Shown piece by piece: positions 5,931-35,739 of a DNA stretch of 64,000 nucleotides. Position 1 is the first letter of the stretch, and every line of letters begins with the position of its first letter. A program made the position numbers and the translations under genes. Origin of the DNA: Monocercomonoides exilis PA203 (Eukaryota; Protista; Preaxostyla); NCBI GenBank assembly GCA_001643675.2, contig LSRY02000015.1:1116001-1180000 (forward strand), written 5' to 3'. The notes under the pieces were generated by a model. That model worked only from the letters and a program-made list of their open reading frames with translations. It ran no database searches and was not told the origin of the DNA.

Positions 5931-6333
5931 AATATAGAATGTGCATTAAACACAAAAATCACAAAAAATACTTGACAAGATCGATATCTCAATAACTGCA
6001 AGAGGAATAATTCTGATAATTTTCCTCTTAATATATCTATTCAATAAAAACTCATTTGATATCCAAAACTTTCAATATTTTTTCATTTGTGCTCAGAAAA
6101 AATAATAATTAAAATCTCGGAGAAAAAGGATTTTGAGTTTCTCCGAGATTTCAATATGTACTTTTTCTGAGCACAAATGAAGCTGCTTTGAAAGATTTGT
6201 ATTTCAGTGGAGTTTGTATTGATGAGATATATTGTGAGGAAAATTTACAGTATTATTCCTCTTGCAGTTATTGAGATATCGATCTTGTCGGATATTTTTT
6301 GCAATGTTTTGAATTTTGTGCACATTCCATATT
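5931..6333. repeat. Long imperfect inverted repeat (~195-nt arms, 12-nt loop)
   Basis: Perfect blocks 5974-6011/6252-6289 (38 bp), 6082-6101/6162-6181 (20 bp) and 6112-6125/6138-6151 (14 bp), all in the same register. Confidence 0.95.
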
Positions 6334-6880
6334 CACATAAAAAAAAGTTTTCAAAAAGAAAATTTCAACATTTGTCATTTGACAAATAATTACCAAGACA
6401 ATAACAATTAATTAGAAACCAATTTTGGCATTAGGCTACTTTAAAGGTACCTAAAAAATATAAAATAAGCTTCATGAAAAGGCTTAATGTTTTCGAGTGA
6501 ACATTCATCAACACTTTTTGGTGTTGACAATATGTTTTATAAATCATTCAACTTTTTTAGGGTTTTCGTTTTCTAAAACAACTGACCCCTAAATGATATT
6601 TTGAATAACTTTTTTGTGAAATTAACTAAATTACAAAAAAAAGACATTTTTAGGCTTTTTAATTTGAATTTTATAGCTATTTGCAATTGTTTGGGTTGAA
6701 AATGACTCTATTAAAGTATTTTTATTAAGTTTGAAATTAGTGTCGAAAAACTTAAGATTTGAATAAAAAACCATTCAATCATTTTTAGTTTTGATCAATT
6801 GGTTATTATTAACCTAATGTATTAATAATATCTTAACATTGTATTTTTTAGCTTTTTATTCATGTATTTAACGAAAAAAT

Positions 6881-7227
6881 CAGGTACCCTTGAAGTGGCA
6901 TCTTGCCCCAATTTTTGAATTTGAAAACCACTGCTGGAATTTAGAACAAAATTTTTTTCTTTAGGATTTTTGTTCCACACAATATTTTTCTGTCTTTTTC
7001 CCAATAAAAAAAAAATTTCTTCATTGTTATGCATGAGAATATTAGACTTATTATAATATGATTTCAGGAAATTTTTGGAACAAAATTCGATTTATTTCAA
7101 AATTGAAAAAAATTAGTTTCATCACTTGAAAATTTCTTTTTTTTTCAAAATATTCAAATAAACAAGTAAAATCATGTTGATTCCAATAATTTTCAATTTC
7201 ATTCTACTCCTCTTTCAAGTATCTGAA
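6881..7227. repeat. Degenerate inverted repeat upstream of the coilin-like gene
   Basis: TTTTGTTCCA 6968-6977 pairs with TGGAACAAAA 7076-7085; TCAGGTAC..TTGAAG from 6881 pairs with TTTCAAGTATCTGA ending 7227; nested pairings lie between. Confidence 0.5.
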
Positions 7228-7382
7228 TCAAAAATTAAAATGTCAATTCAAAAAAGTTTTCAAAAATATGTTTTTTCTAAATAATTTGTGAATCAAACCA
7301 TATTTTCAACAGATAATAATTGAAATAGATTTTGCGCTGAATTAAAAAGTGATTGAGTCAGTTTGACTCCATATTTATTCTA

Positions 7383-8853
7383 ATGAGATATAAGCTTCAG
7401 TTTCATGAAGAATTCTGTTTATCTCAACCACTTCAATGGATTGTTTTTCCTTCAACACTAAAAACTGTTAAAGATTTAGAAAAACACATCAAATCAACTT
7501 TTCGCATTGGACACTCGGTACAATTATCAATTGATGGTTTTGTTTTTCCTCGTAAATCTGCTCTTTGCGATTGTTTTCAAAAAAAGGACATTATAATGTT
7601 AGTTAGCATTATTCTCATTAATTCAGTTTAATTACATTTTTTTTAGCGTGTCTCGCCGAAGGAAACACAAAAAACATGTGGATCATATTGGAATCCATCA
7701 CAAGCACAGAACTTCAGATCTTTCAAAGCTTAATGAAATTGGAAGCTTAATTAGTTCCGATCCAAAATTAAAGAATAGAAAACAATCTATAGATAAACAC
7801 AATACTTCTATAATAAAAAAATCATCTAATAAAATATCAAGCATCAATGTACATTGCTCACCGTCAGAAGAACAAGAAGATTTGCCAATGATAATCGAAC
7901 ACAGAAAAGATCTTTCTGAAAAACTGAATGCAGATGACTTAGAGAATTGTGCTTTGAAGCCAATGGTGGATATTGTGTATCGACAAGATAACACTACTCA
8001 CAAATGTGGGTTTAATAGAATCGAAAGAATGAGAAAAAGAAGAAAAGAGCAAAAGAAAAAGAAAAAACTGAAAATAAAAGAAGAAAAAGAGCAGGAAAGG
8101 TTACGGCAATGTGCAGAATACGAAGAAGAAATGAAACGAAAACAAAATGAAACGATCCAAAAGAACGAGAAAGTACAAATACCGTTGAAGCATCTGGTAT
8201 TTGAATTAGAGACCGAAGAATATGCCACACACTCACAAACACCAACGAGCTCACCAGAAGCTCAAGACCAAGCAGAAGAACTACCGGAGCCAAATTCTTT
8301 TCCAATTTCTCCGTCGCCGCTTTTATCTTCTGCTGCAATGTCATCAAGCTCATCTTGTTGCTCTTCTCCACAAACAACTTCTCCATCTCCATCTGCTACT
8401 TCTGAACCATTTTTCAGCGAAGTTGATCTTTCTGCTCATTTCATACCAACAAAAACAGAAAAAATGGCGGATGATCTTTGCTATCAAGAAGAAAACGATC
8501 AGAGCGGAACAAAAAAAACTCGATTAACAAATCATAGCCATTATCAGGAGGAGATGCAAGCTAATACTTCGATTGAGAAAAATCAGAGTGCAGATGAAAC
8601 CTATGAACCAGGAACGAATTTATCGATCAATACCCTAAGGAAAAAAATGAGTGAAGAAGGCACCTTTTCAGAAGTTGTATTTGAAAACCATGATGAATTA
8701 TTAGAAGAAGGAGAAATTGATTCCGACAAAGAAGCGATTGAGAATGAAACACTAATGGTAAACGAGAAATTTGTCGATACATTGGAAATTATAACAAAAA
8801 AAGGATGTTCAATTAATTTCGAAAAAGCTATCGAACAACTTCAAGTTATTTAA
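7383..8853 (+). CDS. Coilin N-terminal-domain-like protein, 2 exons (intron 7598-7646)
   Basis: Exon 1 MRYKLQF..WIVFP..KTVKDLEKHIKSTF..VQLSIDGFVFP...KDIIIV fits the Coilin_N pattern. It is followed by basic NLS-like runs and low-complexity sequence; the 49-nt GT..AG intron restores frame. Confidence 0.6.
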
Positions 8854-9113
8854 ACGATTTATTTACACTAAATTGCAAATAAAATCTTTAAGTTTATTTA
8901 TTAAAAAGTATTTTCTCATTTCTTTTATTGAAATAAAAGAGAAATATATGTTCCGAAATATTATTATGTTATATAATTTATATTCAAAGGGAAAAATTGA
9001 TCACAGATCAATCGCATTTTTGGCTTGGGAAAGTCAAAGCAACATCCCTTGCATTTTATATAAAGGCACTCCTTCGTGGATTTCGAAAAGAAAAAGTATT
9101 CAGTTGATTATTT

Positions 9114-12100
9114 ATGGTACCTTCGGATAATACCACCCTAGCACCACAGAAATCTTATCTGACATTTGAAGATGAAGTTGTTCGATCTATCGAGTTCAGA
9201 GAGCTTTCTTACATTCGGAGATTCTTTTTTGCCATTGGATGCATTTTAACTTGCGGAATTCTTGCTCTTGTATGCCATTGGTTCCATAGGCTCTATGTGA
9301 TAATGAATTACAGAAAGTGCTCAGCTGAAAAGTCGACCAAGATTGTCATTACAGACGAGTACAAAAATTGTCATGATTGTGACAGAATTTCTTACAATGA
9401 AAATGGCAAGATCATTCATATGTTTCTTTACAAACGGATTCCTTTCTCATTTGATGAAAATGCAAAACAATTCGTTCCAGTTCGCTTTAATCCATCAAAG
9501 CCTTTTTACTATTACGAAAATGTTTTGTCTAAAGGTGTTTATGATCACGAATTAAAGAAATTAAAGGCATACAACGGGAAGAATTCAATTGAAGTTCCAA
9601 TAACTCCATTGTACAAACTTATTCTTGATGAAGGCTTACATCCATTTATATGCTTCCAAATATTTAGCATCATTGTTTGGAGTTTATACGATTACTATTA
9701 TTATGCGGTTCTTGTTGGTGTTATCACAATATTTACGGTCATTTCCCAAATTGTACAGACTCGAATTAACATGAGGAATTTACAAGAAATGACTCGATTT
9801 GAAAGCAAAGTGAAAGTTTACAGAAATGGAAAAGAAGGGCAAATAATAAGTTCATACGATCTTGTTCCAGGAGATGTATTTGAAGCGGAGAATGATATGA
9901 CTTTACCTTGCGATGCTTTGTTATTGTCAGGTCAGTGCATCATGAACGAAACAATGTTGACGGGAGAAAGTGTGCCTGTGATTAAAACAAGTATTCCACA
10001 TTGCTGTCCTCCTCAATGTAATTTATCGGAAAATGAAAATAACACTCAACAAATAAATTCAGAATCAGCTTCATCGGAATCGCAATCAGAAAATCCGGAA
10101 AAAGAAATGGAAAAAACTCTTCCATTTGTGAAACCAACAGAAATCTTAAATATGGAAAGGGACAAGTCGTACATTCTCTTTGGAGGTACCAAAGTAATTA
10201 GAGCTCGATCTCTTCCATCAACTTTGACAGAGCATACCAGACCTGTGTGCATTGCCATTCGCACATCCTTTTCCACTGCAAAAGGACAACTTGTGAGATC
10301 GATCTTATATCCAAGACCAACAAAATTCAAGTTCTTTGAAGATTCTTTCAAATTCATAGGAGTGCTTGCGTGCCTTGCTTTGATTGGGTTCATCGTGAAT
10401 GCCGTTATTCAGACAATGTACGGGGAAGAATTGCTATACATCATATTAAGAGCAGGAGATTTAGTTACAATTGCAGTTCCACCAACTCTTCCAGCGGTTA
10501 TGTCAGCAGGAGTGTCATATGCCATTGCGCGCTTGAAAAAGGATCAGATATTTTGCATTGCATCACAAAGAGTTAATGTCGCAGGAAAGGTTAAAGTTAT
10601 GTGTTTCGACAAAACTGGAACATTGACTGAAGATGGACTTTCTGTGCTTGGTGTTCAAGATGCTTCAAAAGTTCCAATTGACGCGCTGGATGTTGATTGG
10701 GCGCATACAGAGAATCATATGTACCCCCTGCCTCCTGCAGCTCAAACAGAGGCGACTACAAGCCCAACAGGAAATGAAGAAGATAGCATCATAGCATTTT
10801 CTTCACTGAAGACTGAAACAGAAGAACTGAATTCATTGCCGGAAATAATGAGTGCATTGTCAACATGCCATTCAATTGCGACTGTTGATGGGGCGAATGT
10901 TGGAGATCCATTGGACGTGAAGATGTTCGAATTCACAAAATGGAACATGACCGAAAGAGGCGGAGATTCTGAGCTCCAAGGACTCAATTCAATTGATTCA
11001 CAATGCAGCAAATGGATAGATGAAAAAACCGCAATCTCTTCTTCGTATCAGGCAATTGTATATCCATCAGAGAATAATTCGAACAATCAAATGAATGAAA
11101 GCGTAACTGAGAGCTCTTATTTACCATCATTTGTCATCGGAATATTGAGACGTTTTGAGTTCTCTTCTCATCTGCAAAGAATGTCAGTAATAACTCACAA
11201 AAATTCAATGGTCACACCAGATTCAGCTGCTATGTGCAATTCGTCTTCAGATTCTTGCCTGACACAATCGGCATCACTTGACATTTATACAAAAGGTTCT
11301 CCTGAAGCATTATTGCCTCTTTGCACACAATCATCAATTCCTTCAGATTTTCATTCAAAGCTCGCTTCATTCACACAACGCGGACTAAGAGTTCTTGCAT
11401 TAGGACACAAAACAATTCAAATCCCGATGAAATCCAATGTCACATTGTCTGAAGCAAGTGAGCAATCAACACCAAAATCCCTTGACTATGAGGTTGTGAA
11501 TAAGATGCCTAGAGAAGAAGTTGAACATGACCTTACTTTTCTTGGCTTTTTCATCATGGAAAACAAATTGAAGGACACAACAACTGCATCAATTAGCAGA
11601 CTCACAGCTGCAGGAATAAGATCGTTGATGGTGACAGGAGATAATCCACTTACTGCTATCAATGTTGCACGTGAATGCGGACTGATTCCATCTCCTCCTT
11701 TGCATGTCCCTTCGTCAGCAGAAGAAGAGGCAGAAAAGAACAAGAAAGCAGAACGCTCTTCAAAGAAAAAAAGCCGTAAAACAAGAAAGAATCAAGTGCA
11801 GACTGCATCAGCAATGGATGCATATCCTGTTTTCATGGCAGAGTTGGACAAGAATAAAAATGAAGTTGTATGGAGATCTCAGGAACTGCCTGGTTGGACG
11901 CTTGATCCTGAAACTCTTTATCCAATAAAGGAAGTCTCAGCTGACGAAGAAACTATCATTAGCGATGGTGATTTTGAAACGAGCTCACATCGTTTCACTC
12001 CTGTTGTGGCAACTCCACCAATCAACGCACAAGTTAATGACTTGCAATCACTAACTTCATCACCAGTAACTGAATCTCCATCAAGGACGTCTCTAACTCC

Positions 12101-13916
12101 ATCAGCAAGTGCAAATCCTCCGCCATCAGCTACACCAGCATCAAATTTCACATACTATTCAATGCCTTATCCCACATCTTCACCAGCTGCTCTTAGCATT
12201 TGCTCTGCAAGTTCAGCTTCTTCAAGTTCATCAGAATCTTCGGCTTGTTCCATTGAGCCGAATGACACTGCTTCTATTGTGACTCAAATGTCAAAGCAGG
12301 TTGTTATTCAAGAAGCTGTGATTCCAAATTCCGAACAATCAAACGAGTTCTTTGAGAAACCAATTAAAGTTGATGCAGTGAAATTCCACAATGTAAAGGA
12401 TCAGTCTTGCTTCGAGATAAAAACACATCATTCGGAACAGAGCGTTTCTCAATCAGAAGATAACAATGTATTTGCTGACTGGTGTGGTGGCCCTTGGGGA
12501 CCAGTTTATTGGAGAGGAATTCGCATGCCTTCCTCTTTTGTACCGTCACAAGAGAAAGAATCATCGTCTTTACAATCCCCGCCACCTTCTTCAGCATATT
12601 TCCTTGCAGTTACTGGCCCAGCATTCAGGCATATGTATAATGAATATCAGCAACAGTTAAAAACACAAAACACAACTTCATTGGCAAGCCTGTCAGATTA
12701 TACAAACCATAAATCCAACAAGTTATATGAAGATCCAACATTAACATGCTTGTTCCGAAAAGTCTGCTTTTTATCTCCTGTATTTGCCAGAATGTCACCT
12801 GATGATAAAGCGCATCTTGTTGAAACATTGATAGACATGGGATTTATTACTGGTATGTGTGGCGATGGCTCAAATGATTGTGGTGCCCTCAAAGCAGCTC
12901 ATGTGGGTATTTCTCTTTCAGAAGTGGAAGCGTCTATTGCTGCTCCGTTTACAAGCAAAAATGCAAGCATTGGATGTGTTGAAACATTGATTCGTGAAGG
13001 AAGAGGAGCACTGGCTTCATCCTTCAATTCATTCAAAGCGACTGCTATATTCTCTATGATCCAGTTTATTTCAACAGCAATTTTGATTGGATATGATACA
13101 ATGCTTTCAGACTTTGACTTTCTCGTGCTGGATATTTTAATGACTTTGCCCATTCTTTTTACAACAGGATATGCAAAACCTTCAAAAACGCTAAGCCACA
13201 AAACGCCGCAGGGGTCTTTGATCTCATTTCCTGTTATTTCGTCCCTGTTTGTGCATATTGCAATTACTTTTATTGTTCAGTTCGGAGCAACATTAGTCAT
13301 GAAGCAATGCTATGATTATGTTCCAATGGACCCAAGTGAAGAAGATTATGACTTACACATCGAATCCTATGAGACAACCACTGTGTTTCTCTCCTCGCTC
13401 GTATCCTATTTTGTCAGTGGCCTCGTGATCAACCTCACCGACTCGTATTTGCAGCCTCTCTACTCAAACTGGCTGCTCTGTGTGGCTCTCCTGTTTGTGT
13501 TTGGCATCATGGCCTTCACATTCCTTCAGGAGTGGTCCTGGTTTACTGAGTTGATGCAGATGGTCCGATTGGAAGACTCCAAGTTTATTATATACTCTGC
13601 ATGTGCACTTGTTGTATCTTTTATTGTTCTTGCTGCGATCGAATACGGGATTAGTAAGCCAAATCTACCAAAGAAAATATCGAGGGCTCTTAACCCAAAA
13701 AAGAAATATCATCCAAAAACAAAGAATCACAAGGTAAATGTTAGCGATCCTACAGATGCTAATTCGTGCTCAAGTGAGAGAAATACAGCCAAATCAGAAG
13801 CAAGTGAAGAAAAAGCAATAAAAACAGCAAAGATTCGATGTGCGAATTACAAGAAGCCTTATTATGCACTCATTCACCAGATGCAAAACGAACAACAGAA
13901 AGGAATATTAGCATAA
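9114..13916 (+). CDS. P5B-type P-type ATPase (ATP13A2/Ypk9-like, putative polyamine transporter)
   Basis: LTGES, TM4 PPTLP, phosphorylation motif DKTGTLT, GDPLD, KGSPE, TGDN and MCGDGSNDCGALK; multiple TM helices; no introns. Confidence 0.93.
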   Translation: MVPSDNTTLAPQKSYLTFEDEVVRSIEFRELSYIRRFFFAIGCILTCGILALVCHWFHRLYVIMNYRKCSAEKSTKIVITDEYKNCHDCDRISYNENGKIIHMFLYKRIPFSFDENAKQFVPVRFNPSKPFYYYENVLSKGVYDHELKKLKAYNGKNSIEVPITPLYKLILDEGLHPFICFQIFSIIVWSLYDYYYYAVLVGVITIFTVISQIVQTRINMRNLQEMTRFESKVKVYRNGKEGQIISSYDLVPGDVFEAENDMTLPCDALLLSGQCIMNETMLTGESVPVIKTSIPHCCPPQCNLSENENNTQQINSESASSESQSENPEKEMEKTLPFVKPTEILNMERDKSYILFGGTKVIRARSLPSTLTEHTRPVCIAIRTSFSTAKGQLVRSILYPRPTKFKFFEDSFKFIGVLACLALIGFIVNAVIQTMYGEELLYIILRAGDLVTIAVPPTLPAVMSAGVSYAIARLKKDQIFCIASQRVNVAGKVKVMCFDKTGTLTEDGLSVLGVQDASKVPIDALDVDWAHTENHMYPLPPAAQTEATTSPTGNEEDSIIAFSSLKTETEELNSLPEIMSALSTCHSIATVDGANVGDPLDVKMFEFTKWNMTERGGDSELQGLNSIDSQCSKWIDEKTAISSSYQAIVYPSENNSNNQMNESVTESSYLPSFVIGILRRFEFSSHLQRMSVITHKNSMVTPDSAAMCNSSSDSCLTQSASLDIYTKGSPEALLPLCTQSSIPSDFHSKLASFTQRGLRVLALGHKTIQIPMKSNVTLSEASEQSTPKSLDYEVVNKMPREEVEHDLTFLGFFIMENKLKDTTTASISRLTAAGIRSLMVTGDNPLTAINVARECGLIPSPPLHVPSSAEEEAEKNKKAERSSKKKSRKTRKNQVQTASAMDAYPVFMAELDKNKNEVVWRSQELPGWTLDPETLYPIKEVSADEETIISDGDFETSSHRFTPVVATPPINAQVNDLQSLTSSPVTESPSRTSLTPSASANPPPSATPASNFTYYSMPYPTSSPAALSICSASSASSSSSESSACSIEPNDTASIVTQMSKQVVIQEAVIPNSEQSNEFFEKPIKVDAVKFHNVKDQSCFEIKTHHSEQSVSQSEDNNVFADWCGGPWGPVYWRGIRMPSSFVPSQEKESSSLQSPPPSSAYFLAVTGPAFRHMYNEYQQQLKTQNTTSLASLSDYTNHKSNKLYEDPTLTCLFRKVCFLSPVFARMSPDDKAHLVETLIDMGFITGMCGDGSNDCGALKAAHVGISLSEVEASIAAPFTSKNASIGCVETLIREGRGALASSFNSFKATAIFSMIQFISTAILIGYDTMLSDFDFLVLDILMTLPILFTTGYAKPSKTLSHKTPQGSLISFPVISSLFVHIAITFIVQFGATLVMKQCYDYVPMDPSEEDYDLHIESYETTTVFLSSLVSYFVSGLVINLTDSYLQPLYSNWLLCVALLFVFGIMAFTFLQEWSWFTELMQMVRLEDSKFIIYSACALVVSFIVLAAIEYGISKPNLPKKISRALNPKKKYHPKTKNHKVNVSDPTDANSCSSERNTAKSEASEEKAIKTAKIRCANYKKPYYALIHQMQNEQQKGILA

Positions 13917-14674
13917 TAAAACACCCAACTTTTTTATTTGAATTTTCAGTTTTTTTTAAAGCTTATTAACATTATTTTGGTATTGTAAATCATATATTTA
14001 TTTCATTTTCATATATGGGTTTCATATCACTCCTTTCTGGTGTTTTGTTTTGTATAGTAAGTAATTTTAATAACATTTTATTTCTGAATAATCGATGTAC
14101 ATTGGTGAATAGATTATCAATCGTTCAATTGTTATTTTTATTTTGAATTAGTTACATTTTGCTTTAGTATTTTAGTTTTTTTCAATATTTTTTAAAACAT
14201 TTTTATTTTTTGTTTTCGTATGTTAACGTTGAATACTTCCAAGAATTACGCCTCTAATGTCTTTGCTTCTCTTTATTGGTCTTTCATTCTTTCTTTATCT
14301 TATTTTTTTTAAAATTAACTTATACTTTCTGATTGGAGAGTTAGTTGCATTTGTGCGGATTAAAAAACATTTTTTTGAAACTATTGTTTTTTAAGAGTAG
14401 TTCTTTTTTTATTTGACAATTTACGGATTGTAATTTATTTGAATTGTTACATAAAAGTTTTATTTTTTTCAGTATGTCCTAATCTTCCATTATCTGACTT
14501 ATGTTATGCTATAATTTGCATTAGCTTTACTCATCAACAGTGTTTTCTAAAGAATCTTATTCTTGCAAAGTTTGGAGTATTCATTAATTAAAGACGTTAT
14601 GTCGTTTTCAGTGATGTTTATTTGAATCAATTTTTTTCGTTTATTCTTTGAGAATATTTTGCTCTTACTCTCCC

Positions 14675-14848
14675 TGTAGGTGAAGGGAAGTGTGGCGGAA
14701 TGATTCACAGAGAGGGCGCCATGTGAGAGAGGAGATTGCGCTTTCGTGGTTGAATGGAGGTTGGTGCAGGCTGCCTCCAAGGAACCACTGGCAGACGATC
14801 GCTCTCTCGTGTCACTTTCTTGCTTTTCGCTGGCTCTCTTCACCTACA
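14675..14848 (+). ncRNA. Candidate structured ncRNA (GC-rich rod-like hairpin, unassigned family)
   Basis: GC-rich island in an AT-rich spacer. Terminal stem TGTAGGTGAAG/CTTCACCTACA; nested GAGAGAG/CTCTCTC, GTGGTT/AACCAC and TGGAGG/CCTCCA; extra pairs are G-U on the + strand. Confidence 0.55.
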
Positions 14849-16106
14849 AAGCACTAATTTTCAAAGGGTTTTCTTTTATTTTATGCTTTTGCTTTTCAGT
14901 TTTTAACGTTTTATTTGAAATTTTATTTTGATGTTGTAATAATTGAACTAAAAAATATAAAAAAATAAAAAAAATATAAAAAAACTATATTTTGTTTGAA
15001 AATCGGAACATTTTAAAGTTAATTACTGAAAATCCAAAATGCCAAAGCATACAGAACAATTAAATGATAAGTTGATGAACCTTTTTTCAATATTCACAAC
15101 AGCTTCACAATTTCTTTGCAAAAGAAGAAATGGGACAGAATTTTTTCTTTAAAGAAAAATTCAATGATTTGTTCCAAACTTTTTCTGCAAACGAATGATT
15201 ATTATTCTTTCATTATCGTGCAATATTAAATATTAAAATATAAAAAATCGAAAAAAAATCTTTGAAAGAATTATGTGGAACAAAATTCATAAAACAAAAA
15301 ATTTTGTTCCAAATGGTTAGTTAGCAAATAAATCATTAATGACTTTTTTGTCCGTTTTTCAATATGTTGCATTTTATCAATGAATTAAGCATCTTTCTCA
15401 TTATTTTATGAATTAACTTCAGTGCCTCTTTTTCATATTCTAACCGAACGGACATTCAGCGATTGTGCTTATTCTGCTATTTCGCTTTCAGATGAACTCG
15501 GTAAAGTGTAACTTATTGGGTCCGAAATTTTTCATAGAAATTATCTTTATTTATTTCTGAACATTCTTCATTGTTGAAAATTCGATTAATAAATGTGTAA
15601 TTAAGTTTCAACGATTAACAAATAAGTTGTGAATTTCAGTTTCATTACCAAAAATAAAACCAGAATTTTCAAATATTTATAGAAACAAAAAAATTTTCTT
15701 CATTCTCCAAACAATTTGCTTCTTTATTTAACTTTAATCAAAAAATTCTCAAAAAAAAAGGTTGTTATTTACAGAATCTATAAATATTTCATCATCTTTG
15801 AAGTTTTCTTTTCATTATCCATAAAAAATATTGAATGGATCTGTCCAACCTATTGAGTGATAATGATTAAAAAATAATGTTCTGATAGGATTTTTCAATA
15901 AAAAATATAATTTTTATACAAGAAATATCATTCGATGAATGATGATATTCGAATGTGTCGCATTTGGTGAAATATTGATAATAATTCACAATAAATCAGG
16001 ACCCAATATGTTACATCTTACCATGAACTCTTTGATTCACACAGCAAATTTACTTATTAAAACTTAACATTATTATTTTGTCAAAAAAGTCAAAGTGAAA
16101 AAAATT

Positions 16107-24360: not shown

Positions 24361-24691
24361 ATTATTTAATATGTGACCTTATTGTCCTTTGTATTTTTTT
24401 TAAAAATATTAATTTTTTTATTTATTTAATTTGTTCTTTGGTTATTTTCTTTCTAATCTTTGCTTTTTCAATTTTTTTTTATAATAATGTTGCATTAAAT
24501 CTTCTATCTTTGAAACTTTCAAATCTATTTTTCATTTCTGTTAAAATTGCGTATTTTCTATCTTCATAATAGATTTCAACCACTGTGTTATTTCCAATTT
24601 TTTTTTATTTTGATGAAAAAATATAAAATATAAAAGTAGTATGGGCATCGATCAATGAATTATTAATTGATGTGGTTTTTTGGCTATTTAT

Positions 24692-27600
24692 ATGAATCTA
24701 CATCTGCATTTGATAACTCTTTTAATTAACTATGTTTTATGGATTTTTCAAGATGTATTTTGCGTTGAATCTTCTTTTTCATCTTTTTCTTCGGACACGT
24801 CAAATTTATTTATTCCATTACAACCTTCTGTTCATCAAATTCTAAATGAAACTGGAAGGGAGTCTTTAAGTTCATTTCCATGCATATTATTTCAGTTTAA
24901 TAGTAATTTTTCTCTTCTTTCATCGTCTTCTTTTTCGTCCATTTCTCTTCAAAATGCATCATTTTTTTTAAGTTCTATAAATTTTGATGTTTACCATCAT
25001 TATCCGCTGTTCAACATTTCGTTATCTTCTGTACTTTCTATACATGCATTTACTATTAATTTTTCGACATTCAGAAACTGCTCAATTTTTCATTGTTTTG
25101 GAACTGTGTCAATCAAAAACATGAGTATTGCTTGCTCATTTATCAAGCCAATAGTCGTAAATCCTATTATAGATATGCGCAGCGAAAATGGACTGTTGGA
25201 TTTGTCATCTTTTAATGAAAATTCTCTTCAGTTCTCCCGCTCGTTTCTATTTGAAGGGATTGGAAAACAAGTGAGAATTGAAAATTGCAATTTTAATAAC
25301 GTTTCCTTCTGTAAATCGAAATCATCTTTAAATGCGCATATGTTTTTGGAAACTTGTTTCAGTTCTAATAATTATTTTCATGAATGCTCTGATCCAATAT
25401 TAGATATTCTACACGGAACTGATCATACAACAGAGATCTTCACATCATTAAACGATACTTTTGATAACTGTCACAGGCACTCTCGTGAAACCTTGAGATG
25501 GATATTTTGGCGTAAATCAAACTCCTATCAGAACAGTAGAATTTACTGTGAATCTGTCAAATTTGAAGCAGCAACATTTCAGTCATGCTCAGCAGAGGGT
25601 GAAGTGGGCGATGGTGAAACAACAGAAAACTGTGGAGGAGGAATCATGATGTATGTGCCAGCAGAACCACAATCACGCACAACTTCCCCAAATTCACTTA
25701 GCAAAGCTCCTATATTTCATTCTTCATCCTCTGCACGTATTTCAACTTCATCTTCCTCAACTGCTTTTCCTTCCTCATCTGCGACTGATTCCGTCCGGCC
25801 TTCACTTTCCATCCTCTCCTGCAGCTTCATCGACTGCTCCGCCTCTCTTTCTGGCGGCGGGGTGGCTGTGTTTGGCGATGTTTCTGTGCAAATCACAGAT
25901 TCCTTGTTTGTTCGCTGTGCAGCTGAAAAAGGCAGGGGCGGTGGCATTTTGACAAAGACAGCCAATTCGAAGGTGTTTTTGAGACATTCGGCGTGGCTGG
26001 ATTGTGCAGCACACGAAAAGGGAGCAGCAGTCGCAATGGACATGGGAGTGCTGAATATAAGTGTGCTATTTGTATTTTATTATTGCTTTATGGAGAAAAT
26101 GTTCCAATGAGAATAATTTTTTATTAATTTTCAAATATTTTTTTTTTAAAAAAAAAGATTTTTATTGTCTTTTTTATTTCTTTTCTGTTCTATTTGACTC
26201 TTGTTCGCATGATTGTTTATTTTATCTTTTTTTTTTCTTTTTCTTTTTTTTTCTTTTTCTTTTTTTTTTTTGCTTTATTGATGCCATTCACATTTTGTTC
26301 CAATTCTTTCTTCTTTCTTCTGTCAGGTCTCATGAGATATTACGCACTCAACTGCACTTTCATCAGATGCCTCAGCGAATCTCAGTCAGGTGGGGCATTC
26401 GCATTCTCTTTCTACACATTTTTCGATTCAGCAGATGGATCAGAAAATTTCCCATTTCCAACTTTTGTCTCGTCACAGTTTTCTTCTTCATCTTCTGTCT
26501 CATCTTCTGTCTCATCTTCTATCTCGTCTTCTGCATCATCTTCTTATTCGTCAACTTCATCGACAACTTCAACTTCCTCCTCTTCTCATTTACAATTTCA
26601 TTCACACACTCACACAAGCCACTTCTCCACATCACCTACACCTACACCTTCTCCTTCTCCTTCTCCCTCTCCTTCTCCCTCTTCCCCTTCACCAGCATCC
26701 ACTCCACCCATCACCAAACATCTCTTTTCCGGGTGCCATTTCGTCAACTGCTCCTTCAACCTCAACACTTGCGGCGTCTTCCTCGAAGAAAGCGTTCTTT
26801 TCCTTCAGTCTTTTTCTCTGGACTCTGTTCTGATGCCCTGGGAATCTCCTTTCTCCTCTTCATCTTCCACTCATCTGACTGACTTTGTGCACTTCAAGCT
26901 GCACATGCCTTTCTTTGCAGTTGACTTTGGTAGGATGCTGCAGCCGTTTGTGCAGATGAATGGAAATGAGAATAAAAATGAGAATTTTGATGAAAATATG
27001 AACGATAATGGAAGCAAAAATGATAGAAAACAGACAAACTTGGAAAATGACATCGCTCATGATTCACGAAACGATGATTCTGAAGCAAATAAATCTTCTT
27101 CATTGGATTCTTCTTCTTCTCCTCATCCTCCTTCTTCAGCTGAAAGTGACAATCACACAACGCACATCAAATCTAACTTATTAAGTTGCTCCAACAATAA
27201 TACTTCTTCTCCTCATCAACACTCGGATCAATACCCTCAACAACAGCTGAAGTGGTATATCCAAAGACTCAAATTCGCTTTCCTTTCCTCCTCCTCTTCT
27301 TCTTCATCCTCTTCCTCCTCAACAGCAAAACCCCATATCCACAGCAACCCCGTCACACCAGCCTCGCTATCAGTCCTCTTCAAGCTCAGCACGTGGCTTA
27401 ACAGCACCATCCAAACACGACACGTCTCCAAAGCAAAAGAAGGCGATGCGTCAAAGCTGTGTGGAGCAACATTACTCAACCCTTGCAGCAGCATCGCCAG
27501 TGCTGTTGATTTATGCCTGTCGCCCGATCAGATCGATGTACAGCTGCTGTTGTTGGCACAGGAGACAGAAGAGGAAGAGCGGAGAGTGTCAGAGGAGATG

Positions 27601-30600
27601 GAGAACGCATACAAGGACGCACTTCTGGGGACTGAGGAAGGAGGTTACCCGGGGCATGAAGTGATGCCTTCGAGGGTGTATTCATTGCCTTTATTACATT
27701 TTTCTTCTTCTTCTTCTTCTTCTGAAACTGCTGCTGCTTCTTCAAGACTGCACTCCAAAGCAACCACAAACCTTTCTTCTCAATCCAAAAGAAACACACT
27801 TAACAATCTGTATCTGAATGTGCTTCTGTTAGACAGAGACACATTCACCGAGTTCACCACCGTGAATGTGCTGAGCAAGCACGTTGAGATTATGGGCCAG
27901 TCACCTTCCTCTCATTCAGTCACATCATCACTGATTTCAAACAAACCAGCATTTGCAGTCACAACAGGAATGCTGCGGCTGAAGCGCATCACGTTCTTCC
28001 ACAAGTTGCATGTGGTGTCAAATGACTCACCGCTGTTTGTTGTCAAGGGAGCAGAGGATGATGTGAGTGCGAATCAGATGGATGCAGGTGAAGCAAGAAA
28101 GAGGATGATGATGGGATCAGCAAAGACAAATGTGAAGGAAGAACTTATTCGGAAGCTGTCACTGAATGATTCTGAGCAAAAGACAGAAAGAAATTCTTTA
28201 TCTGAAGATGATTTTGATTCAATTTCCAATATAAATGACAGAAACAAAGAGGTGAGCAGGGTACATAACCAGTTTGAAGTCAAAAGACAAAGTCCAATTC
28301 AAAGTATTGATGAGGCATTTACCGCAAAAGGCACACTCATCTTTGACGAGTCAATTCTGACCTGCACTCCAGGCGATGATGGCAAATACACTCAGCTGAT
28401 GGCTCCAGTTGTTGCTGTTGTGGATGGGTTTTTCATTGTCCTCAACTCGCAAATGAAGATGTTCAGTGTGAAATACCCGCTGATCTTTCTGTATGCTCCT
28501 TCACAACCTTCTATCTTTGCACGGTCTTTTTCTTTGCGTACCATTCCTGGCATTGTGCTGCAGAACTCGGTTATCTCAAACATTCACAGCTCCTCCAGAC
28601 TCTGTTCTGTCTTCTCTTCCACAAGCCAAACACTGCAGTCACATGGCAATATCACACCAGATTTGCCACAACGCAATGAATTCCAGCTTTCTCGTCCGTC
28701 TCATCCTCCTTTTGCTCTCTGGATACTCAACACAACCATAAACAACTGCACAGCGCCTTATTCGTATCGAGGCGGGGCATTGTATCTGAAGATTCCTTCG
28801 ACCACAAGTTCCGCTGCCAATGAGCTTTTAAGCTATTCGGACGAGCAGCTGCAGACTGTGTTGTCTATGCCTTCAACAACTATCATGCTACCAGCCAATG
28901 AAGAACTGGGACGAGTCTCACTTTCCTTTGTCAACGTGACCATTTCCAACGGCGGCTGTCTTGCATCTCCCTCTGCACCGGGCGAAGTTGGCAGAGGCGG
29001 AGGCGTCTTTCTTTCGCTGTGTCCGGATCAGATTGCTGACGGAAGCGTAGCTGCGAACATCCCCTTCCAGTTTGAAGACATTCGCTTTTATAACAACACA
29101 GCGTGCATCGCGCCGGACTTGTACATTCGGATGGCGTCGATGTCGGAGCAGCTGAAGAGTGCCTATTTTCACCTGTCGTTTGACGAGGATGATGAGGCGT
29201 ATCAGAATGGCATCATGGGGTCAGATGCAGCACGAGACAACCAATTGAAAGTGGAGGACGAAGAAATATGTGCAGATTATTCTGATATTGAGCTTCTTTC
29301 CCTGATACACTTCTACAAGTCAAGAACAGTGGTAGTGAGTCATAATGGTGTAGACAACACGTTGTGCGGGAGATTTTCAGCGCCTTGTTTGACACTGAAT
29401 CATGTTGTGCAGCATTTGCTGACAAAGGAAGAAAGAATTGCGGAGGAGCAGCTGAAAAATGAGGAAAACAATGAAAGCAGTGCAGTTATTGACATTAACT
29501 CTGAGCAGATAAAGTATGGGGAAATCTTTGTAGGTGAGAAATGTTCCATTGAAACTGTGATGATATTGAGAGATTCACATGTGTCTGTTCTTTTAATGTC
29601 TTCTTCTATCTCAACAACAACAGCAGCAGAGAAAAGTTTGCAAAGGAAATATGCGGAATTTAATGAAGGTGAAAATATTGATGGGCATAAGAATCTGTTT
29701 TTGGACACTCTTATAAGATCCTCAATAATTGTGAATTGTTCGTTTCCATTCTCTCCATATGATAGTGGTGTTTTGTGCTGTTTGGGCTCAGTTCTGTTCT
29801 CGTTCATAAGCTTTATCTTTGGCGGAGAGTGTGTTGTTACTCATGAATTCTTTATGTTTGCAAGTACTGACGAATTCACTCTCACAGATGTTAGCTTTGT
29901 TTGTAGCAATGACGTTGCACTCGCGATGGAAACAGCAAAGCTGCTATGTTGTGTTAGAGGAATTGTGACGATAGAAGGTGTTTCTATTGATGGAAATATC
30001 GCAGCAAATGAATTGTTTCAGGTGCGAACTGTTCAAACAGTGTCACTTTATTCTGTTTCAATTAATCATACTTCCAATGAAGGCGCCTTGGAACATAATA
30101 ACACGAGGATTTCTTTTGTGAATTGCTCCATCATTAAAATCGTGTCGTGCACATTTAGTGGCATTGTTAGTGTGGATTCTGTTCCGGCTTCTTCATTTGG
30201 AAATCTGTGCACATGGAACACCTCGTTTCTGCGAATGGAGAATAGCACTGCCACACTGCAAAACACAGTCATTGCGAATGCATCAATCGGAGGCATTTAC
30301 TCGAAAGGAAGCAATTTGTCATTGAACAACTGCACATTCATGAACAATTCACGTCAGCTGAAGGGGTTTGAGTCGTATCGTCGCAATGTTGTTTGCTCGG
30401 GAAAGGGGATTTTAACTGTCAATTCAATGGTCACTTCCAGCTTAAGCAATGAAAGAATGAACCATGAGATGTTGAAATCTTTTAAACTTAAAGATTCACA
30501 CTTTTTATCCAGTTTATCTGAGTTTTCTGATTTGATTCAATCCGAAATGAATAAAAATGAGAAGACCTCTTCTGCCATTCTTGCAACGCCGAATCAATCT

Positions 30601-33360
30601 TTCTGGATTCACAACGAAGGATGTAAAATTCGGGGTGTTCCGTCAATTCTTGCCTCCTCATATTTCATCCCTTCTTTGACAAAAGTGTCATATGAGACGA
30701 TCAACAAAGTCACACACCGAATAATATTTGAAGGGCAATTGCTATTTCCTTGTTTGCTTGCCTTCCGCATTGTGAAAACGAGCGGAGAAAGCTCAACAAC
30801 AACAGACTATCAGTTCACGAACGATCTGTTTGTCAACGAAAGCTACGTGATTGGTACCATCCCTTCTTCTGTGATCTTCTCATCCCGCCCCTTTGAGGAG
30901 GTTGCTGTGCAGCTGAGCTTCAGCACAGGAGTATTCTCTTCCGAATCATCATCAACTCCAACCAGAGCATTCACTCCGTTGTTTGTCCTGAAGAATGCCT
31001 CTTCTGTTTCAGGTGGAGAAGATGATCCTCCGATCGGGACAGGGAACGAGACAGGAGATTCTGGGAAGCACAAACCAAAACCGCATAACGAAAGCAGTGG
31101 TGGAAACCCTTCGTCGTCTCATCCAGAGAACAACCAGAAGGAGCTGAGCAGTCTGCTGCTGATCATAATTGTGGTTGTGTTCTGTGCGTTGCTATGTATT
31201 GTGATGGGTATTGTGGTGATATTTGTGCTGAGGAGGCTGTTCAAGAAGCGGATGATTGTGGAAGTGGCTGCAACTGACAGGGAAGCTCATCCGAAAGAGC
31301 AGGAAATCAACGAAATAGAAGACGAGAATAAGGAAATGTGCTTGCAAAACAAACTGAAGGAAAAAGAAAGCATCGAATTGAGTCAACGGCACTCGTCTCT
31401 TATATATTCAAAGGAGGCTGAAGAGATCATGGGGAGCAAAATATCATTGTATCTCAAAAATGACATGTTGAAAACTACAATTAACAAGGAAAAAGTAAAT
31501 TTAAACGATAGGAAATCAAAAAATTTAAAGGTGATTGAAAAAGAAAGTGAAAAAGAAGGAAGCGAGCAGCCAGCTGGCCAAGATGCTTTGAGCCTTGAAA
31601 TAAAAGGAACTAAAACCGTCGAATCAAAAACTCAAAAGACGGCTGCGAAAGAAAGTCGGGCAAGACATCGGCATTTGGATGTGGAGCTTGTGGAAGAGGA
31701 GCTGTTTGACGAGCCGCTTCCAAGGGCAATGCGAAAGCAGCAGCAATCACAGAAGAAAATACGCCTTGTAAGGAAGACAGGGGCAAGAAATGGCCTCAAA
31801 TGTGCAAAGAATGTGTCTGGACAGCAGAACAGAAAGAGAGGAGAAATGAAAGGCAATGCTGCAAGAAGTAATCGTTTTAATGGTGTTGGTGAAGGAAATA
31901 CGGCTTCTCAAACACCATCTTTGCTGTCCATTTCAATTCCAACTTCATTTTGTGAATCTTCGGCTCCATGCTCATCTTCAACTTCATCATCATCATCTTC
32001 TTCTTCTTCTTCAACACACTCACCATCGCCCTCTCCTTCTCCTTCGTCTTCTCCTTCGTCTTCTCTCTCAACATCCTCATCCTCGTTCACTTCCGCCTCA
32101 ACATCTTCAGCTTCAGCCTCAACTTCGAATTCTTCTTCTTCCTCATCTTCATCGTCTCCAACTTCTACTTCTTCATGTGAATCAACTTCTCCCTCCAAAA
32201 CTCAATCTGTTTCTCAATCACCTTCTCAAGCTTCATCTCGATTTCTCACTCCTTTTGCTTCGTCCTCTCCTTCACCCTCTCCTTCATCCTCTCCTTCATC
32301 CTCAATATCCCCTTCACCATCACCATCATCTTCTCCTCTATTTGGGCGCATTCCAGACAGCTTTCTGCACTCTTTTACGCCTCCGTCTAACTGTATCTCA
32401 GCTAAGCCATTTCACTCAGCTTCTCCTCAGTCCATCCTCAGCGACTCTTCTGCTGCAATAGCAACGGCTACTTCTACTGCTTCTTTCGCTGCCTCTGTTT
32501 CTGCTGTTTCTCATACAAATCATCTTCGAAGTTCGCAAAGTACTAGTCCAAGACCATTTATAGAGCGCGATTCTCAGTTGAACGGATTCGTTGGAAGAGG
32601 CGATGGAGATTCATTTGATGCTCCGACTTCACTTTCTTGTGCCAAGAAAGAAGAATTGAGCAGACATGTGCAAATCAGAAAGCATGTTCAAGGCACTTCT
32701 GATGTGGAGCATTCGATAAACATCAAAAGTGGAAAAGGAGAAAGTGATAAAAATACAAGTGACAAGTCGAACGAAGCAATTGGAAGACAAGAAAACAATA
32801 AAAATATACTCAGTTTTGGTAGCATTGAACGTGACGGAAAGGAAAGGGGGATTTTGGAAGGGAAAGAGGAAATTAAAGTAGAGGAAGAAAATTTTAATGA
32901 GACAGAAGAAGGTGAGGAAGAAGAAGTGGAGGAGGAATATGAGGAAGAAGAAGATGAGGAGGAGGAGGTGGAGGAGGAGGAAGAAGAGGAAGAGGAAGAG
33001 GAAGAGGAAGAGGAATCCGAAGAGGAAGAGGAATCCGAAGATAGCTCAGCAAAGCCAACATTTCTTGATAGTGAAGTTCATTATCAGTTGCTTTCAACGC
33101 AGCAAAAAATGAACACTTATAGACCCCTTCTTATTCCAACGCTGGCTGTGAGCCCAAATGAAGCTAAGATTTCTGATAACTTGGATGTGGACAACGAAAA
33201 TAAGAAGAATTGTGTGTTTGATGAAAACAAAGACAATGTCAACAATGCAAGCGAACTGAGCTTGAGCTCTGAATGCCCAAGCGGGATAGATTTGATGGAT
33301 CCCCAAAATGTTTTTGGTGCTTTGGGGTTGAGAGCAATAATGAGTGATTGCTACAAATAA
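24692..33360 (+). CDS. Large type-I membrane protein (~2800 aa) with GG[A/G][I/V/L] beta-helix-like repeats and a Ser/Glu-rich cytoplasmic tail, 2 exons (intron 26061-26326)
   Basis: Hydrophobic N-terminus; GGGV/GGGI/GGAL motifs; CG..PC modules; TM LLLIIIVVVFCALLCIVMGIVVIFVL (~31153-31230). A phase-1 GT..AG intron with a long polypyrimidine tract joins the two ORFs. Confidence 0.75.
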
Positions 33361-34022
33361 TCATATGGTTGTTATTCTTTTTCTGTGAATGTTGTAATAC
33401 TCAGACATTTGATTAAGATATTTAATGATGTTTTTTTATTTATTTATTTGACTTGAAAAGAATCCGTCATATTGGACTTTTTTTTTCAAAAAGTTGGGAT
33501 AAACGTTTTTATTGAGCCCAATTTTGAAAGTGCTATGTTAATTCATACATTTTATTCTAAATTAATCGGTATAACGATTTTTTTGATGTTTAGTTTTTAT
33601 TATTCTGATGTTTGTTTATTGTTTTTTTTCATACCCTTTAAATTGAGAACCTCATTTCAATAGATATGTATCGTGCTTATATTTATGAAGTTTTTTCAAT
33701 TTATTTGCAGAATTTTCGTTTATTTCACATTTTACAATTTACTTTCATCCTTTCATTTATTCTTTTTAAATCTGTTTTCTCCTTGAGTTTTTGAATGTCT
33801 TTAATTAAATATATATTAAATCTTATTTATAATCAAAAGTCGTTTTTTTTTTAAATTGAATTAGCAAAAGGGTATGATACGACCTGCAAAAAATTCCAAA
33901 AACAACTGTATTTTTTTTATGATCCAAAAAAGTCTGTCTTAAGTTTAATATCGAAAAAGCCTTTATTAGCTTTCCAAGTTCTTTTTGAAAATTATTTTGA
34001 TTTATTAATCGGGATTTTTTAT

Positions 34023-35033
34023 AGGGTTTTGATTTTATCTTGACCTTTTTTATTTATCTAAACCTTTTTCTTTTTTGTCATGCTTTTAGCTTTACACAAG
34101 CCTGCGATAAATAAAAAATAATCAGAAATGTTTGTAATGTTTTATTTTCCTTATTCTGTATTTTTTTTCGATATTTCATGTTTCACAAAAAGATCGAGGA
34201 TAATAATAATATTATATTTTGATCATTGACTTGCTGCTATTCCAGCGAATATTTTTTATTGGAAGTTTTAAGCTTTCAAATCATAATTCATCGTTTTATT
34301 TTTATAAGTTGAACTTGTTTTAAACTTTCTCAACTCGTTTTTTTTACACTTTTTCTCATTTCACTCATTTTTTCAAAAAACACGATTTTAAGGATACATA
34401 TGAATTTGTTTTGAAATTTATTGAAATAATTAATAAACATTATCAAAATAAAACGATTCTTGTATGTTTAAACGATTATTTGTTTGTTAGTATTTGGTAA
34501 TTTGAAACACAAAAAAATGATACATACATGCTTTTCAGTACAAATTCTTTTAAAGTTCATTTTCATTTCAATGCTTAATGCAAATAAACGATAAATATGA
34601 CTTTATATATTTTTTTCATTTAAATAAAATTTGACACAAACACTTGTTTTTATTAAAAATCGTGTTTTAAGCAAAAACAGTGAAATGAGAAAAAAAGGTT
34701 AAAAATTATATTGAAAAAGTTAAAAACCAGTTAAATAATAATATAGGAGTGTAGAATTATGATGTTGTGGCTTTTAACGTTTTATATAAAATATTCGCTT
34801 CAAAGCCAGCAAGTCTTTGAACTGGATACTTAAAATAAAAAAATAATAATAATTTTTAAGAAAAAAAATTTTATCAAAATTTAAAATAACAGAAAGTTGT
34901 AAATAATTTTGATAAAATAGTTTATAAATTTATTTTTTGTTTCAAACCTTTGCTAAGCTCGAAAAAAGCATCAGAAAGCTTCAAGAAAAAGTGTTGAGAT
35001 AAAAATTTGACGTCAAGATAAAATATGCACCCT
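34023..35033. repeat. ~1-kb imperfect fold-back (long inverted repeat)
   Basis: Nested paired blocks 34032-34044/35012-35024, 34228-34236/34807-34815, 34244-34255/34788-34799, 34280-34289/34754-34763, 34350-34365/34679-34694 and 34377-34389/34656-34668. Confidence 0.88.
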
Positions 35034-35487
35034 TAATATTTTTTTTTAAAAATTTCCTTTTGAATAATTTTTTCATATCACAAAAACTTCTTATCTTGAC
35101 CAAATTTTTATTCTTACTCACGAAAAACCACTAATATGGATATTACAACTTGATAATGTTGTTTCACACATCTATGTTAAGACTCTAGAGCATGAACAGA
35201 AATTTGATCAAAATATACAACTTTTTATTTATTCTAGAAATATACATGTGTAATTCTTTTTGAAAAGTCGCAAATGTTTAATTTTCAAATAAATCAAAAT
35301 TTTCAAATGTTGCTCACAATTTTGTTAACAAACACCAAACTTTTCAAATATTAAATTTATTATTTAATAATGCCATTTCATGAATTTAAAGAAGATTCAT
35401 CTAAGGAAACAGAAATTTGAGCAAGACATGAGATTTTTAATATATTTAAAAATAAAACGTTAGAGACTTTTCAAAAAAAAAATACCC

Positions 35488-35739
35488 ATATGGCATTTTT
35501 TTTTTGAAACTTCCTTTTGTTGAATTTTCAAATAAAAGAAGAATTTCATATTTTCATCAATTTTCTGTTACCACTTACAAAACTCTTTCAAAATGGAAAT
35601 AAAAGCAAAACTATGTTATTCTTTCCATTTCAGAAAAGTTTCGTAAGTTGGAACTGAAAACTGATGAAATTATTAGATTTTTATTTTTTTTTTTTTGAAG
35701 ATGGAACAATGGAAGTTTTCAAAAAAAGATCAGCCATAT
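35488..35739. repeat. ~250-nt imperfect hairpin
   Basis: ATATGGC/GCCATAT, AAACTTCC/GGAAGTTT, TTTCATCA/TGATGAAA, ACTTAC/GTAAGT and AAATGGAAA/TTTCCATTT; the inner three blocks share one register. Confidence 0.85.

Follow-up and report, generated by a model that had tools for sequence, protein, structure and literature searches.

The closest described counterparts of the elements considered here are Stowaway-like and Tc1/mariner MITEs such as MADE1, which are short, ORF-less, TA-duplicated, high-copy and dispersed, and which consist almost entirely of an inverted repeat, so that a long hairpin forms from either a lone DNA strand or a read-through transcript. Human MADE1 is the source of the mir-548 hairpins (PMC1784062). 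Among other inverted-repeat elements, hAT-type MITEs combine short terminal inverted repeats with 8-bp target-site duplications, and Foldback (FB-type) and other long-inverted-repeat transposons carry arms that are closer within a copy than between copies. On the RNA side, hpRNA loci and plant-type long miRNA precursors are long, nearly unbranched and strand-specific stems.

A 64,000-nt window of the Monocercomonoides exilis PA203 nanopore assembly had been predicted to carry at least five long spacer hairpins, read as a single recurring set of hairpin RNAs under selection or of structured spacers. Four of the five are real fold-backs, whereas 6881-7227 folds no better than dinucleotide-shuffled sequence, and a sixth fold-back at 35247-35488 (z -6 to -7) had been overlooked. 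At a probability of about 0.88, the recurrent fold-backs are decaying copies of four MITE families (A, C, D and E), 6881-7227 is no hairpin, and 14675-14848 is a separate object and likely a structured RNA. The features, in window coordinates, are as follows.

5935-6329, no strand: copy of palindromic MITE family A, about 395 bp, the entire element consisting of two inverted arms
6427-6907, + strand: copy of MITE family B, not palindromic overall, with terminal inverted repeats of about 25 nt
6881-7227, no strand: the supposed second hairpin, made up of the last bases of the preceding MITE copy (family B) and a degenerate repeat fragment (about 6946-7117), with no real fold-back
14675-14848, + strand: GC-rich rod, candidate structured RNA, single-copy, 69 base pairs, unrelated to the MITEs
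34024-35032, + strand: copy of the family C element, about 1.0 kb
35070-35233, + strand: degenerate fragment of a family E relative, 74% identity
35247-35488, no strand: copy of palindromic MITE family E, 242 bp
35491-35736, no strand: copy of palindromic MITE family D, 246 bp, the hairpin originally listed as 35488-35739

The fold-backs at 5931-6333, 34023-35033, 35247-35488 and 35488-35739 are Tc1/mariner-style MITEs, a call based on hundreds of candidate copies per family, on TA target-site duplications and on terminal inverted repeats. The matches cover nearly the whole element and number 179-981 candidates per family (at least 534 for family A, 179 for C, 736 for D and 981 for E), counts that represent a rough first look in which palindromic copies were possibly counted on both strands; the 40 matches scored for each of these families are spread over many contigs, with identities of 75-88%. 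Element length is 242-1010 bp, the elements are free of overlapping ORFs of 150 aa or more, and in families A, D and E the inverted repeats span the whole length. TA flanks both ends of 18 of 26 copies in family C, 13 of 26 in family D and 18 of 26 in family E (background TA dinucleotide frequency 0.046), a 2-bp TA duplication being indistinguishable from a 4-bp ATAT duplication in families D and E. Each element would be a short, non-autonomous DNA transposon that consists of a pair of inverted arms and has a TA dinucleotide as its insertion site. The resemblance to Stowaway-like and Tc1/mariner MITEs extends to all the traits listed above, including the capacity of one strand to form a long hairpin; in contrast to those described elements, the present ones are new sequence families in an oxymonad.

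Tc1/IS630-type DDE transposases presumably move these families in trans. The genome contains at least 108 DDE_3 (PF13358) loci with E of 0.001 or less, most of them above the family cut-off and many with intact ORFs of about 424 aa, as well as four loci with weak Transposase_1 matches. About 930 bp separate an intact 422-aa DDE_3 ORF from a complete family A-type terminus (TA and CAG with about 105 bp), for which no partner was found within 4.9 kb. Since the search for an autonomous element sharing both termini was negative for every family, the link to Tc1/mariner is drawn from the TA duplication and the CAG termini.

Family A provides the most detailed picture. Its copy in the window, flanked by TA at 5933-5934 and 6330-6331, has degenerate termini (TAG...CCA, as against CAG...CTG in the family), and its ungapped 172-nt arms are 82% complementary, with z of about -25 against dinucleotide shuffles. 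Family members genome-wide match at 80-86% identity on both strands; the TA/CAG...CTG/TA boundary, read from the alignment, is present at about 25 of 29 left ends and 24 of 29 right ends; and the consensus is about 96% self-complementary (0.955) over 358 bp and carries one or two units of a 19-bp subterminal repeat. The mismatches between the arms of the window copy form 19 clusters (P about 0.0001), with a perfect run of 38 bp (P about 0.002) and no gaps. The original prediction had argued that neutral decay should scatter mismatches, an argument that fails because these clusters coincide with positions that are hypervariable across the whole family (Mann-Whitney p = 0.00017). Substitutions thus pile up at family-hypervariable positions, whereas every copy retains the subterminal segments, where the transposase probably binds. 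Moreover, clustered mismatches without register shifts, described as an architecture common to the clearest hairpins, belong to 5931-6333 only; in the copies at 35.2-35.7 kb, mismatches fall at random and there are 5-8 gap positions.

The family D and E copies lie side by side and share the TA at 35489-35490; a second TA at 35737-35738 closes the family D copy, whose fold-back (35488-35739) reaches z of about -10 against dinucleotide shuffles. Consensus self-complementarity is 0.891 in family D and 0.835 in family E. The two neighbours share terminal sequence, an exception to the claim that the hairpins have no primary sequence in common, which holds in general. The family C copy, with at least 179 candidates at 81-87% identity, is built differently: it has terminal inverted repeats of about 50 nt starting with GGG, an internal inverted repeat of about 165 nt, and flanks of TA on the left (34022-34023) and TT on the right. 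End-to-end register is kept by only 58-65% of its pairs (z about -10), and 34023-35033 is therefore a combination of terminal repeats and the internal 165-nt inverted repeat, not one rod.

The supposed hairpin at 6881-7227 begins inside the family B element, within its right terminal repeat. Searches for inverted repeats found none there, and its z-scores of -0.7 with DNA parameters and -1.5 with RNA parameters led to its rejection as a hairpin. The family B copy itself is bordered by an 8-bp target-site duplication, CCAATTTT, at 6419-6426 and 6908-6915; at least 67 candidates (80-89% identity) were counted in the genome, and the duplication is exact in five of the six copies examined and retained at seven of eight bases in the sixth. 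Short terminal inverted repeats and 8-bp duplications are also the mark of hAT-type MITEs, to which family B may belong, although Merlin and P elements, too, give duplications of about 8 bp. Family B forms no fold-back and is of interest here only as the place where the supposed hairpin begins.

Among the listed hairpins, the RNA reading of the original prediction fits one, the single-copy rod at 14675-14848, and does not fit the MITE hairpins. The rod has a GC content of 54% in a spacer of about 27% GC, a z of -4.8 and predicted folding energies of -83.3 kcal/mol on the + strand versus -61.1 kcal/mol on the - strand; its pairs comprise 34 G-C, 23 A-U and 12 G·U, the last in both orientations, against a single A·C mismatch. 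BLAST and a covariance model each return a single match in 82 Mb. Rfam gave no match at the gathering threshold across the whole window and only chance-level matches around the rod (E > 4), no tRNA or tmRNA was found, and no paralogue or homologue was found; with neither an Rfam match nor a paralogue, the rod becomes a candidate unclassified structured RNA. On these folding predictions, it is most likely a structured RNA made from the + strand and belonging to a class absent from Rfam. As a strand-specific, nearly unbranched 69-bp stem in a genome with a Dicer-like enzyme and Argonaute, it recalls hpRNA loci and plant-type long miRNA precursors, a likeness of shape only, with no homologue or family match behind it.

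A possible but doubtful alternative is that the rod is not an RNA gene: it could be a decayed inverted duplication, or a coding exon or UTR whose pairing is incidental. Such an origin would suit the missing Rfam family and the lack of a paralogue or homologue to supply covariation, as well as a GC content like that of M. exilis coding DNA and reading frames that stay open across the rod for 57 codons on the + strand and 98 codons on the - strand. Additionally, a polypyrimidine tract ending in AG lies just upstream and would allow the rod to be read as an exon or part of a UTR. However, a DNA palindrome in neutral decay would not be expected to show either a strand difference of 22 kcal/mol or a 12:1 ratio of G·U to A·C with both G·U orientations represented (binomial p about 0.003). 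The encoded peptides have no significant Pfam match, the best (E = 0.2) falling far below the family cut-off, and the rod lies 759 nt past the stop codon of the upstream P5-ATPase gene, as against a mean 3'UTR of 312 nt in M. exilis (PMC8767320). A structured RNA continues to be the preferred reading of the rod.

The MITE arms behave differently within the window and across family A. In the window copies, identity between an element's own arms is equal to or below identity with the arms of other copies (0.793 vs 0.792 in family A, 0.742 vs 0.768 in D and 0.667 vs 0.725 in E), and because own arms are no more alike than arms across copies, these copies are best regarded as decaying relics, not selected RNA structures; they would be decaying neutrally. 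Across family A, by contrast, 183 Watson-Crick-compensated double changes stand against 15 uncompensated ones, where about 38 doubles are expected under independence, and the best partner of the left arm is the copy's own right arm in 12 of 30 copies. This co-variation implies that the lineages giving rise to new copies retain or restore their palindromy through a DNA-level process, for which hairpin-templated repair or arm-to-arm conversion could account. Arms closer within than between copies are a trait of FB-type and long-inverted-repeat transposons, and larger fold-back relatives at other loci, 0.6-2 kb in size, show 100% identity between the arms of one copy over the stretch that was searched, as against at most 88% between copies. 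In contrast, the window copies of the palindromic families measure only 242-395 bp and show arms that have drifted apart; the arms here also seem to lack the tandem-repeat organisation of Drosophila FB elements.

The notion of a cruciform-forming DNA element class, also raised in the original prediction, was loosely right, in that the elements are palindromic MITEs. A stronger version, in which they are a functional class whose palindromy is actively maintained because they act as recombination or replication hot spots seeding fold-back duplications, would draw on the concerted evolution of the family A arms and on the D/E-type sequence found at the centres of near-perfect 0.6-2-kb palindromes elsewhere in the genome. 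Concerted arms are, however, predicted equally by the copying or repair of such elements, with no need for a host benefit, and the window copies show no arm maintenance. Furthermore, the palindromic flanks examined are themselves multi-copy repeat families and therefore represent larger fold-back transposons instead of host structures, all of which makes a functional cruciform class improbable.

Less probable still, and close to refuted, is the reading in which the fold-backs together make up a single functional system in the spacers, as hairpin-RNA genes under selection (long hpRNA, endo-siRNA or miRNA-like precursors, or structured UTRs). In its favour, the hairpins are long and stable (z -6 to -25), family-level arm co-variation exists, and MITE-derived hairpins give rise to miRNAs or siRNAs in other eukaryotes (PMC1784062, PMC9641971). 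The search for Dicer and Argonaute genes proposed at the outset was also borne out, with four Piwi-domain loci (up to 179 bits) and one 1200-aa open frame with two RNase III domains; a parallel search for RdRP gave no match and was uninformative, its control likewise being without a match. Against this, one of the five listed hairpins is not a hairpin, and each MITE hairpin is one among hundreds of dispersed transposon copies with target-site duplications. Three of the listed hairpins have arms that derive from multi-copy transposon families marked by target-site duplications and terminal inverted repeats, the very outcome that the original prediction had named beforehand as contrary to its view. 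Both strands also fold about equally well (minimum free energies of the + and - strands of -197 and -206 kcal/mol for family A, -236 and -227 for C, -85 and -78 for D, and -53 and -56 for E), and single-arm mismatches of the G·T and A·C kinds occur in similar numbers (122/109, 75/57 and 51/71), so that no RNA-type wobble signature exists. With hairpins that have no strand preference and window copies in which the arms are not conserved beyond the family level, the single system of selected hairpin RNAs is not supported. For the decaying MITE copies, hairpin potential would instead be a by-product of element design, a property of the DNA that is equal on both strands.

The idea that AT-rich, low-complexity DNA forms such hairpins by chance, or that they are nanopore assembly artefacts, is encouraged by the shuffled-like behaviour of 6881-7227 and by spacers of only 22-27% GC, but it is refuted for every other hairpin by z-scores of -5 to -25, by three BLAST-significant local inverted repeats in the window versus a mean of 0.05 in 20 block shuffles, and by the recurrence of the same elements on dozens of contigs, each with its own target-site duplications.

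Transcribed MITE hairpins may nevertheless have a secondary role as Dicer substrates. A bolder pair of proposals holds that the rod is the precursor of a new structured or Dicer-processed class of oxymonad RNA and that the MITE arms are kept by active hairpin-templated correction, feeding long dsRNA hairpins to Dicer and Argonaute; these readings we consider rather unlikely. If the second were true, a hairpin-RNA system would exist as a genome-wide transposon product, not as dedicated genes.

Altogether, these results remove a tempting false lead, as the long rod-like spacer hairpins of M. exilis are transposon copies, and any prediction of hairpin RNAs or miRNAs in this organism needs these MITEs to be masked first. 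The genome paper assigns 35% of the M. exilis assembly to "unclassified repeats" and makes no mention of MITEs (PMC8767320); part of that fraction can now be named and its anatomy given. The MITE part of the finding is ordinary. The rod is different, and offers a cheap and concrete candidate to be checked against published cDNA data. The co-variation of family A arms, together with the larger fold-back relatives, suggests that palindromes in the M. exilis genome are regenerated at the DNA level.

The long intergenic fold-backs of the original prediction are real in part, and the hairpin-RNA system proposed from them is not supported. Scanning the window from end to end for inverted repeats returned five pairs. 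By BLAST self-comparison 3 local inverted repeats are significant, whereas 20 block shuffles that preserve dinucleotides give 0.05 on average. Four of the five hairpins originally listed fold better than shuffled sequence (z from -4.8 to about -25) and one does not, while a further hairpin, absent from that list, was recovered beside them.

Fold-backs and associated elements in the window (z, folding against shuffles)
5931-6333: hairpin of family A; z about -25; inverted-repeat pair 5954-6125 / 6138-6309 (172 nt, 82% complementary, ungapped)
6427-6907: family B, a non-palindromic MITE, in the spacer at 5.9-7.3 kb
14675-14848, candidate on the + strand: GC-rich rod; z -4.8
34023-35033: hairpin of family C; z about -10; two inverted-repeat pairs within it
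35247-35488: hairpin of family E, the addition to the list; z -6 to -7; inverted-repeat pair 35254-35326 / 35408-35480
35488-35739: hairpin of family D; z about -10
31957-32009 / 32941-32993: inverted-repeat pair that is not a hairpin; pyrimidine-rich against purine-rich triplet low complexity, coding

The candidate that fell away, 6881-7227, reaches z of only -0.7 (DNA parameters) or -1.5 (RNA parameters), and begins within the right terminal repeat of the family B copy. At 34023-35033 the 1-kb element does not form a single unbroken rod: of the pairs predicted for it, only about 60% stand in end-to-end register. The low-complexity pair falls inside a 2388-aa ORF (26194-33360), for which Pfam gave no match, as it gave none for the ORFs at 4189-4845, 7648-8853 and 36138-36875.

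Each AT-rich hairpin was searched against the whole M. exilis assembly (82,301,135 bp, 101 contigs), with candidate counts that are first-look lower bounds: at least 534 for family A, at least 179 for family C (query 34000-35060; 81-87% identity), at least 736 for family D (query 35470-35760) and at least 981 for family E (query 35230-35500). Forty scored matches of family A lie on many contigs and both strands, near full length and 80-86% identical. Alignment of 25-29 further copies of each family with their flanks gave family A the termini CAG...CTG and one or two units per element of a 19-bp subterminal repeat; TA adjoins the element on the left in about 25/29 cases and on the right in about 24/29. 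Family C begins with GGG and ends with CCC; families D and E begin with TGG, end with CCA and have about 40 nt of terminal sequence in common. TA stands on both sides of 18/26 (C), 13/26 (D) and 18/26 (E) copies, against a background of 4.6% of dinucleotides in the window. Since the window copies are short and ORF-less, and each family is present in many copies that carry terminal inverted repeats flanked by target-site duplications, the AT-rich hairpins of families A, C, D and E are MITEs; multi-copy transposon arms with target-site duplications, the outcome that the original prediction had itself named as speaking against it, were thus found for all four.

The TA duplication points to a Tc1/mariner-type mobilisation. 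The DDE_3 transposase loci of the genome number at least 108, many of them intact, and one (L132, G000:C12:941207-944611) carries at 431-535 a complete family A-type terminus, comprising TA, CAG and about 105 bp of arm, with an intact DDE_3 ORF of 422 aa (1459-2724) some 930 bp away. Neither a matching second terminus nor an inverted repeat was found in the joined 4.9 kb, and this locus is only a possible autonomous relative.

The family B copy is bounded by an exact 8-bp target-site duplication, CCAATTTT (outer limits 6419-6915); the family has at least 67 candidates genome-wide, and an 8-bp duplication accompanies 6/6 copies examined, one of them differing at 1/8 bases. This suggests a hAT-like or Merlin-like origin. 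Four MITE pieces (C, an E fragment, E and D) are nested in the spacer at 34.0-35.7 kb, where the adjoining E and D copies (35245-35738) are separated by a single TA common to both (35489-35490), so that the TA beside one element served as the insertion site of the other. Just downstream of the nest, A-runs interrupted by TTC repeat in tandem over a short stretch (35810-35880), at intervals of about 11-13 nt.

TA-duplicating, hairpin-forming MITEs are a classic kind of element, and the families described here are of that same kind, new families in an oxymonad and no new kind of system. In annotation, the likeness of such MITE hairpins to small-RNA precursors is a recognised pitfall (PMC3495686); hairpin-forming MITEs are also a known source of genuine miRNAs (PMC1784062, PMC9641971). 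The M. exilis genome paper reports 46% repeats, with 'unclassified' repeats making up 35% of the genome, and does not mention MITEs (PMC8767320); MITEs and RNAi are absent from the M. exilis literature searched.

To the original prediction, the clustered symmetric mismatches looked more like selected RNA structure or a cruciform-forming class of DNA element than like neutral decay; four tests say that the MITE hairpins are not selected as RNA. Minimum free energies are equal between strands, at -197/-206, -236/-227, -85/-78 and -53/-56 kcal/mol (+/-) for families A, C, D and E. RNA made from a given strand would tolerate G·T mismatches, and A·C mismatches would be tolerated on the other strand only; in copies with only one arm departing from the family consensus, the two types are balanced in the three families counted (G·T/A·C 122/109, 75/57 and 51/71). 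In the window copies, the left arm matches the right arm of the same copy at an identity of 0.793 (A), 0.742 (D) and 0.667 (E), and the right arms of other copies at 0.792, 0.768 and 0.725, respectively; since own-arm identity is no higher, pairing at the window loci has not been preserved since insertion. The clustered architecture itself holds in the family A copy only, with 19 mismatch clusters (P about 0.0001) and a 38-bp perfect run (P about 0.002), whereas mismatches in the D and E copies are randomly scattered, with 5-8 gap positions. Even in family A the clusters are explained by the family: the mismatched pairs sit at family-wide variable positions (mean variability 0.159 vs 0.077, p = 0.00017), and the long perfect helices are subterminal segments conserved in all copies.

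At family level, the arms of these small MITEs show evolution in concert, most strongly in family A. Among 30 of its several hundred copies, 183 double changes are Watson-Crick-compensated and 15 are not; arms changing independently would be expected to give about 38 doubles in all. The two arms of one copy are on average more alike (identity 0.872) than same-side arms compared between copies (0.844), and in 12/30 copies the left arm's best partner is its own right arm. Such co-variation is weaker in family D and almost absent in E. The family A signal is the same for both strands and so is a DNA-level effect; the palindrome may have been kept or regenerated in source lineages, or one arm may have been corrected against the other upon hairpin extrusion of the element.

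Elsewhere in the genome, imperfect MITE sequence of D/E type forms the centre of near-perfect palindromes 0.6-2 kb long.

Larger palindromes, by locus outside the window (coordinates within the locus)
L035 (G000:C44:386044-389298): 653-2614
L122: 3591-4410
L124: 3582-4422
L125: 3674-4240

That these are D or E copies within perfect palindromes of unique flanking DNA, produced by fold-back repair at the hairpin, was rejected for L035 and L122, because their flanks are repeat families, one with at least 53 candidates and the other with at least 1208, often present as inverted pairs about 300 bp apart. In both of these tested loci the searched stretch of arm shows 100% identity within the copy and at most 88% between copies, the same pattern as in family A of arms more alike within than between copies. 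The palindromes look like a class of larger fold-back transposons with arms evolving in concert.

The RNA reading retains support at the rod at 14675-14848. It is a single match in the genome by BLAST, a genome-wide search with a single-sequence covariance model of its structure recovered nothing but the rod, and it is without a terminal inverted-repeat or duplication signature. Its GC content is 54% vs about 27% in the surrounding spacer, and the predicted fold is unbranched, with 69 pairs (34 G-C, 23 A-U and 12 G·U, the G·U in both orientations) and one A·C mismatch only; the minimum free energy is -83.3 kcal/mol on the + strand vs -61.1 on the - strand. Such strand-specific wobble pairing fits RNA under selection and not a decaying DNA palindrome, which makes the rod a candidate RNA on the + strand. 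Rfam gave no match at the gathering threshold across the window and, with E allowed up to 10, none significant in the region of the rod, a tRNA and tmRNA scan found nothing, the open frames of the rod have no significant Pfam match, and the exact 25-mer at its apex has no match in JGI metagenomes. We put at slightly better than even (about 0.55) the probability that the rod is a structured RNA of a class without an Rfam match.

The rod lies 759 nt past the stop codon of a gene for a P5-type cation-transporting ATPase; the mean 3'UTR in M. exilis is 312 nt (PMC8767320). The 1600-aa ORF of that gene, 9114-13916 (+), contains E1-E2_ATPase, P5-ATPase and Hydrolase domains, and AATAAA stands directly at its stop codon. 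The search for Dicer and Argonaute genes suggested by the original prediction was productive, with two RNase III domains in one 1200-aa open frame (Dicer-like) and Piwi domains at four loci (together G000:C22:80457-81815, G000:C28:121800-122711, C47:1987965-1988648, C47:1302294-1303028 and C8:157110-157766); for RdRP (PF05183) the genome gave no match, and neither did the control. The rod is a possible Dicer substrate, and it deserves comparison with the existing M. exilis transcriptome.
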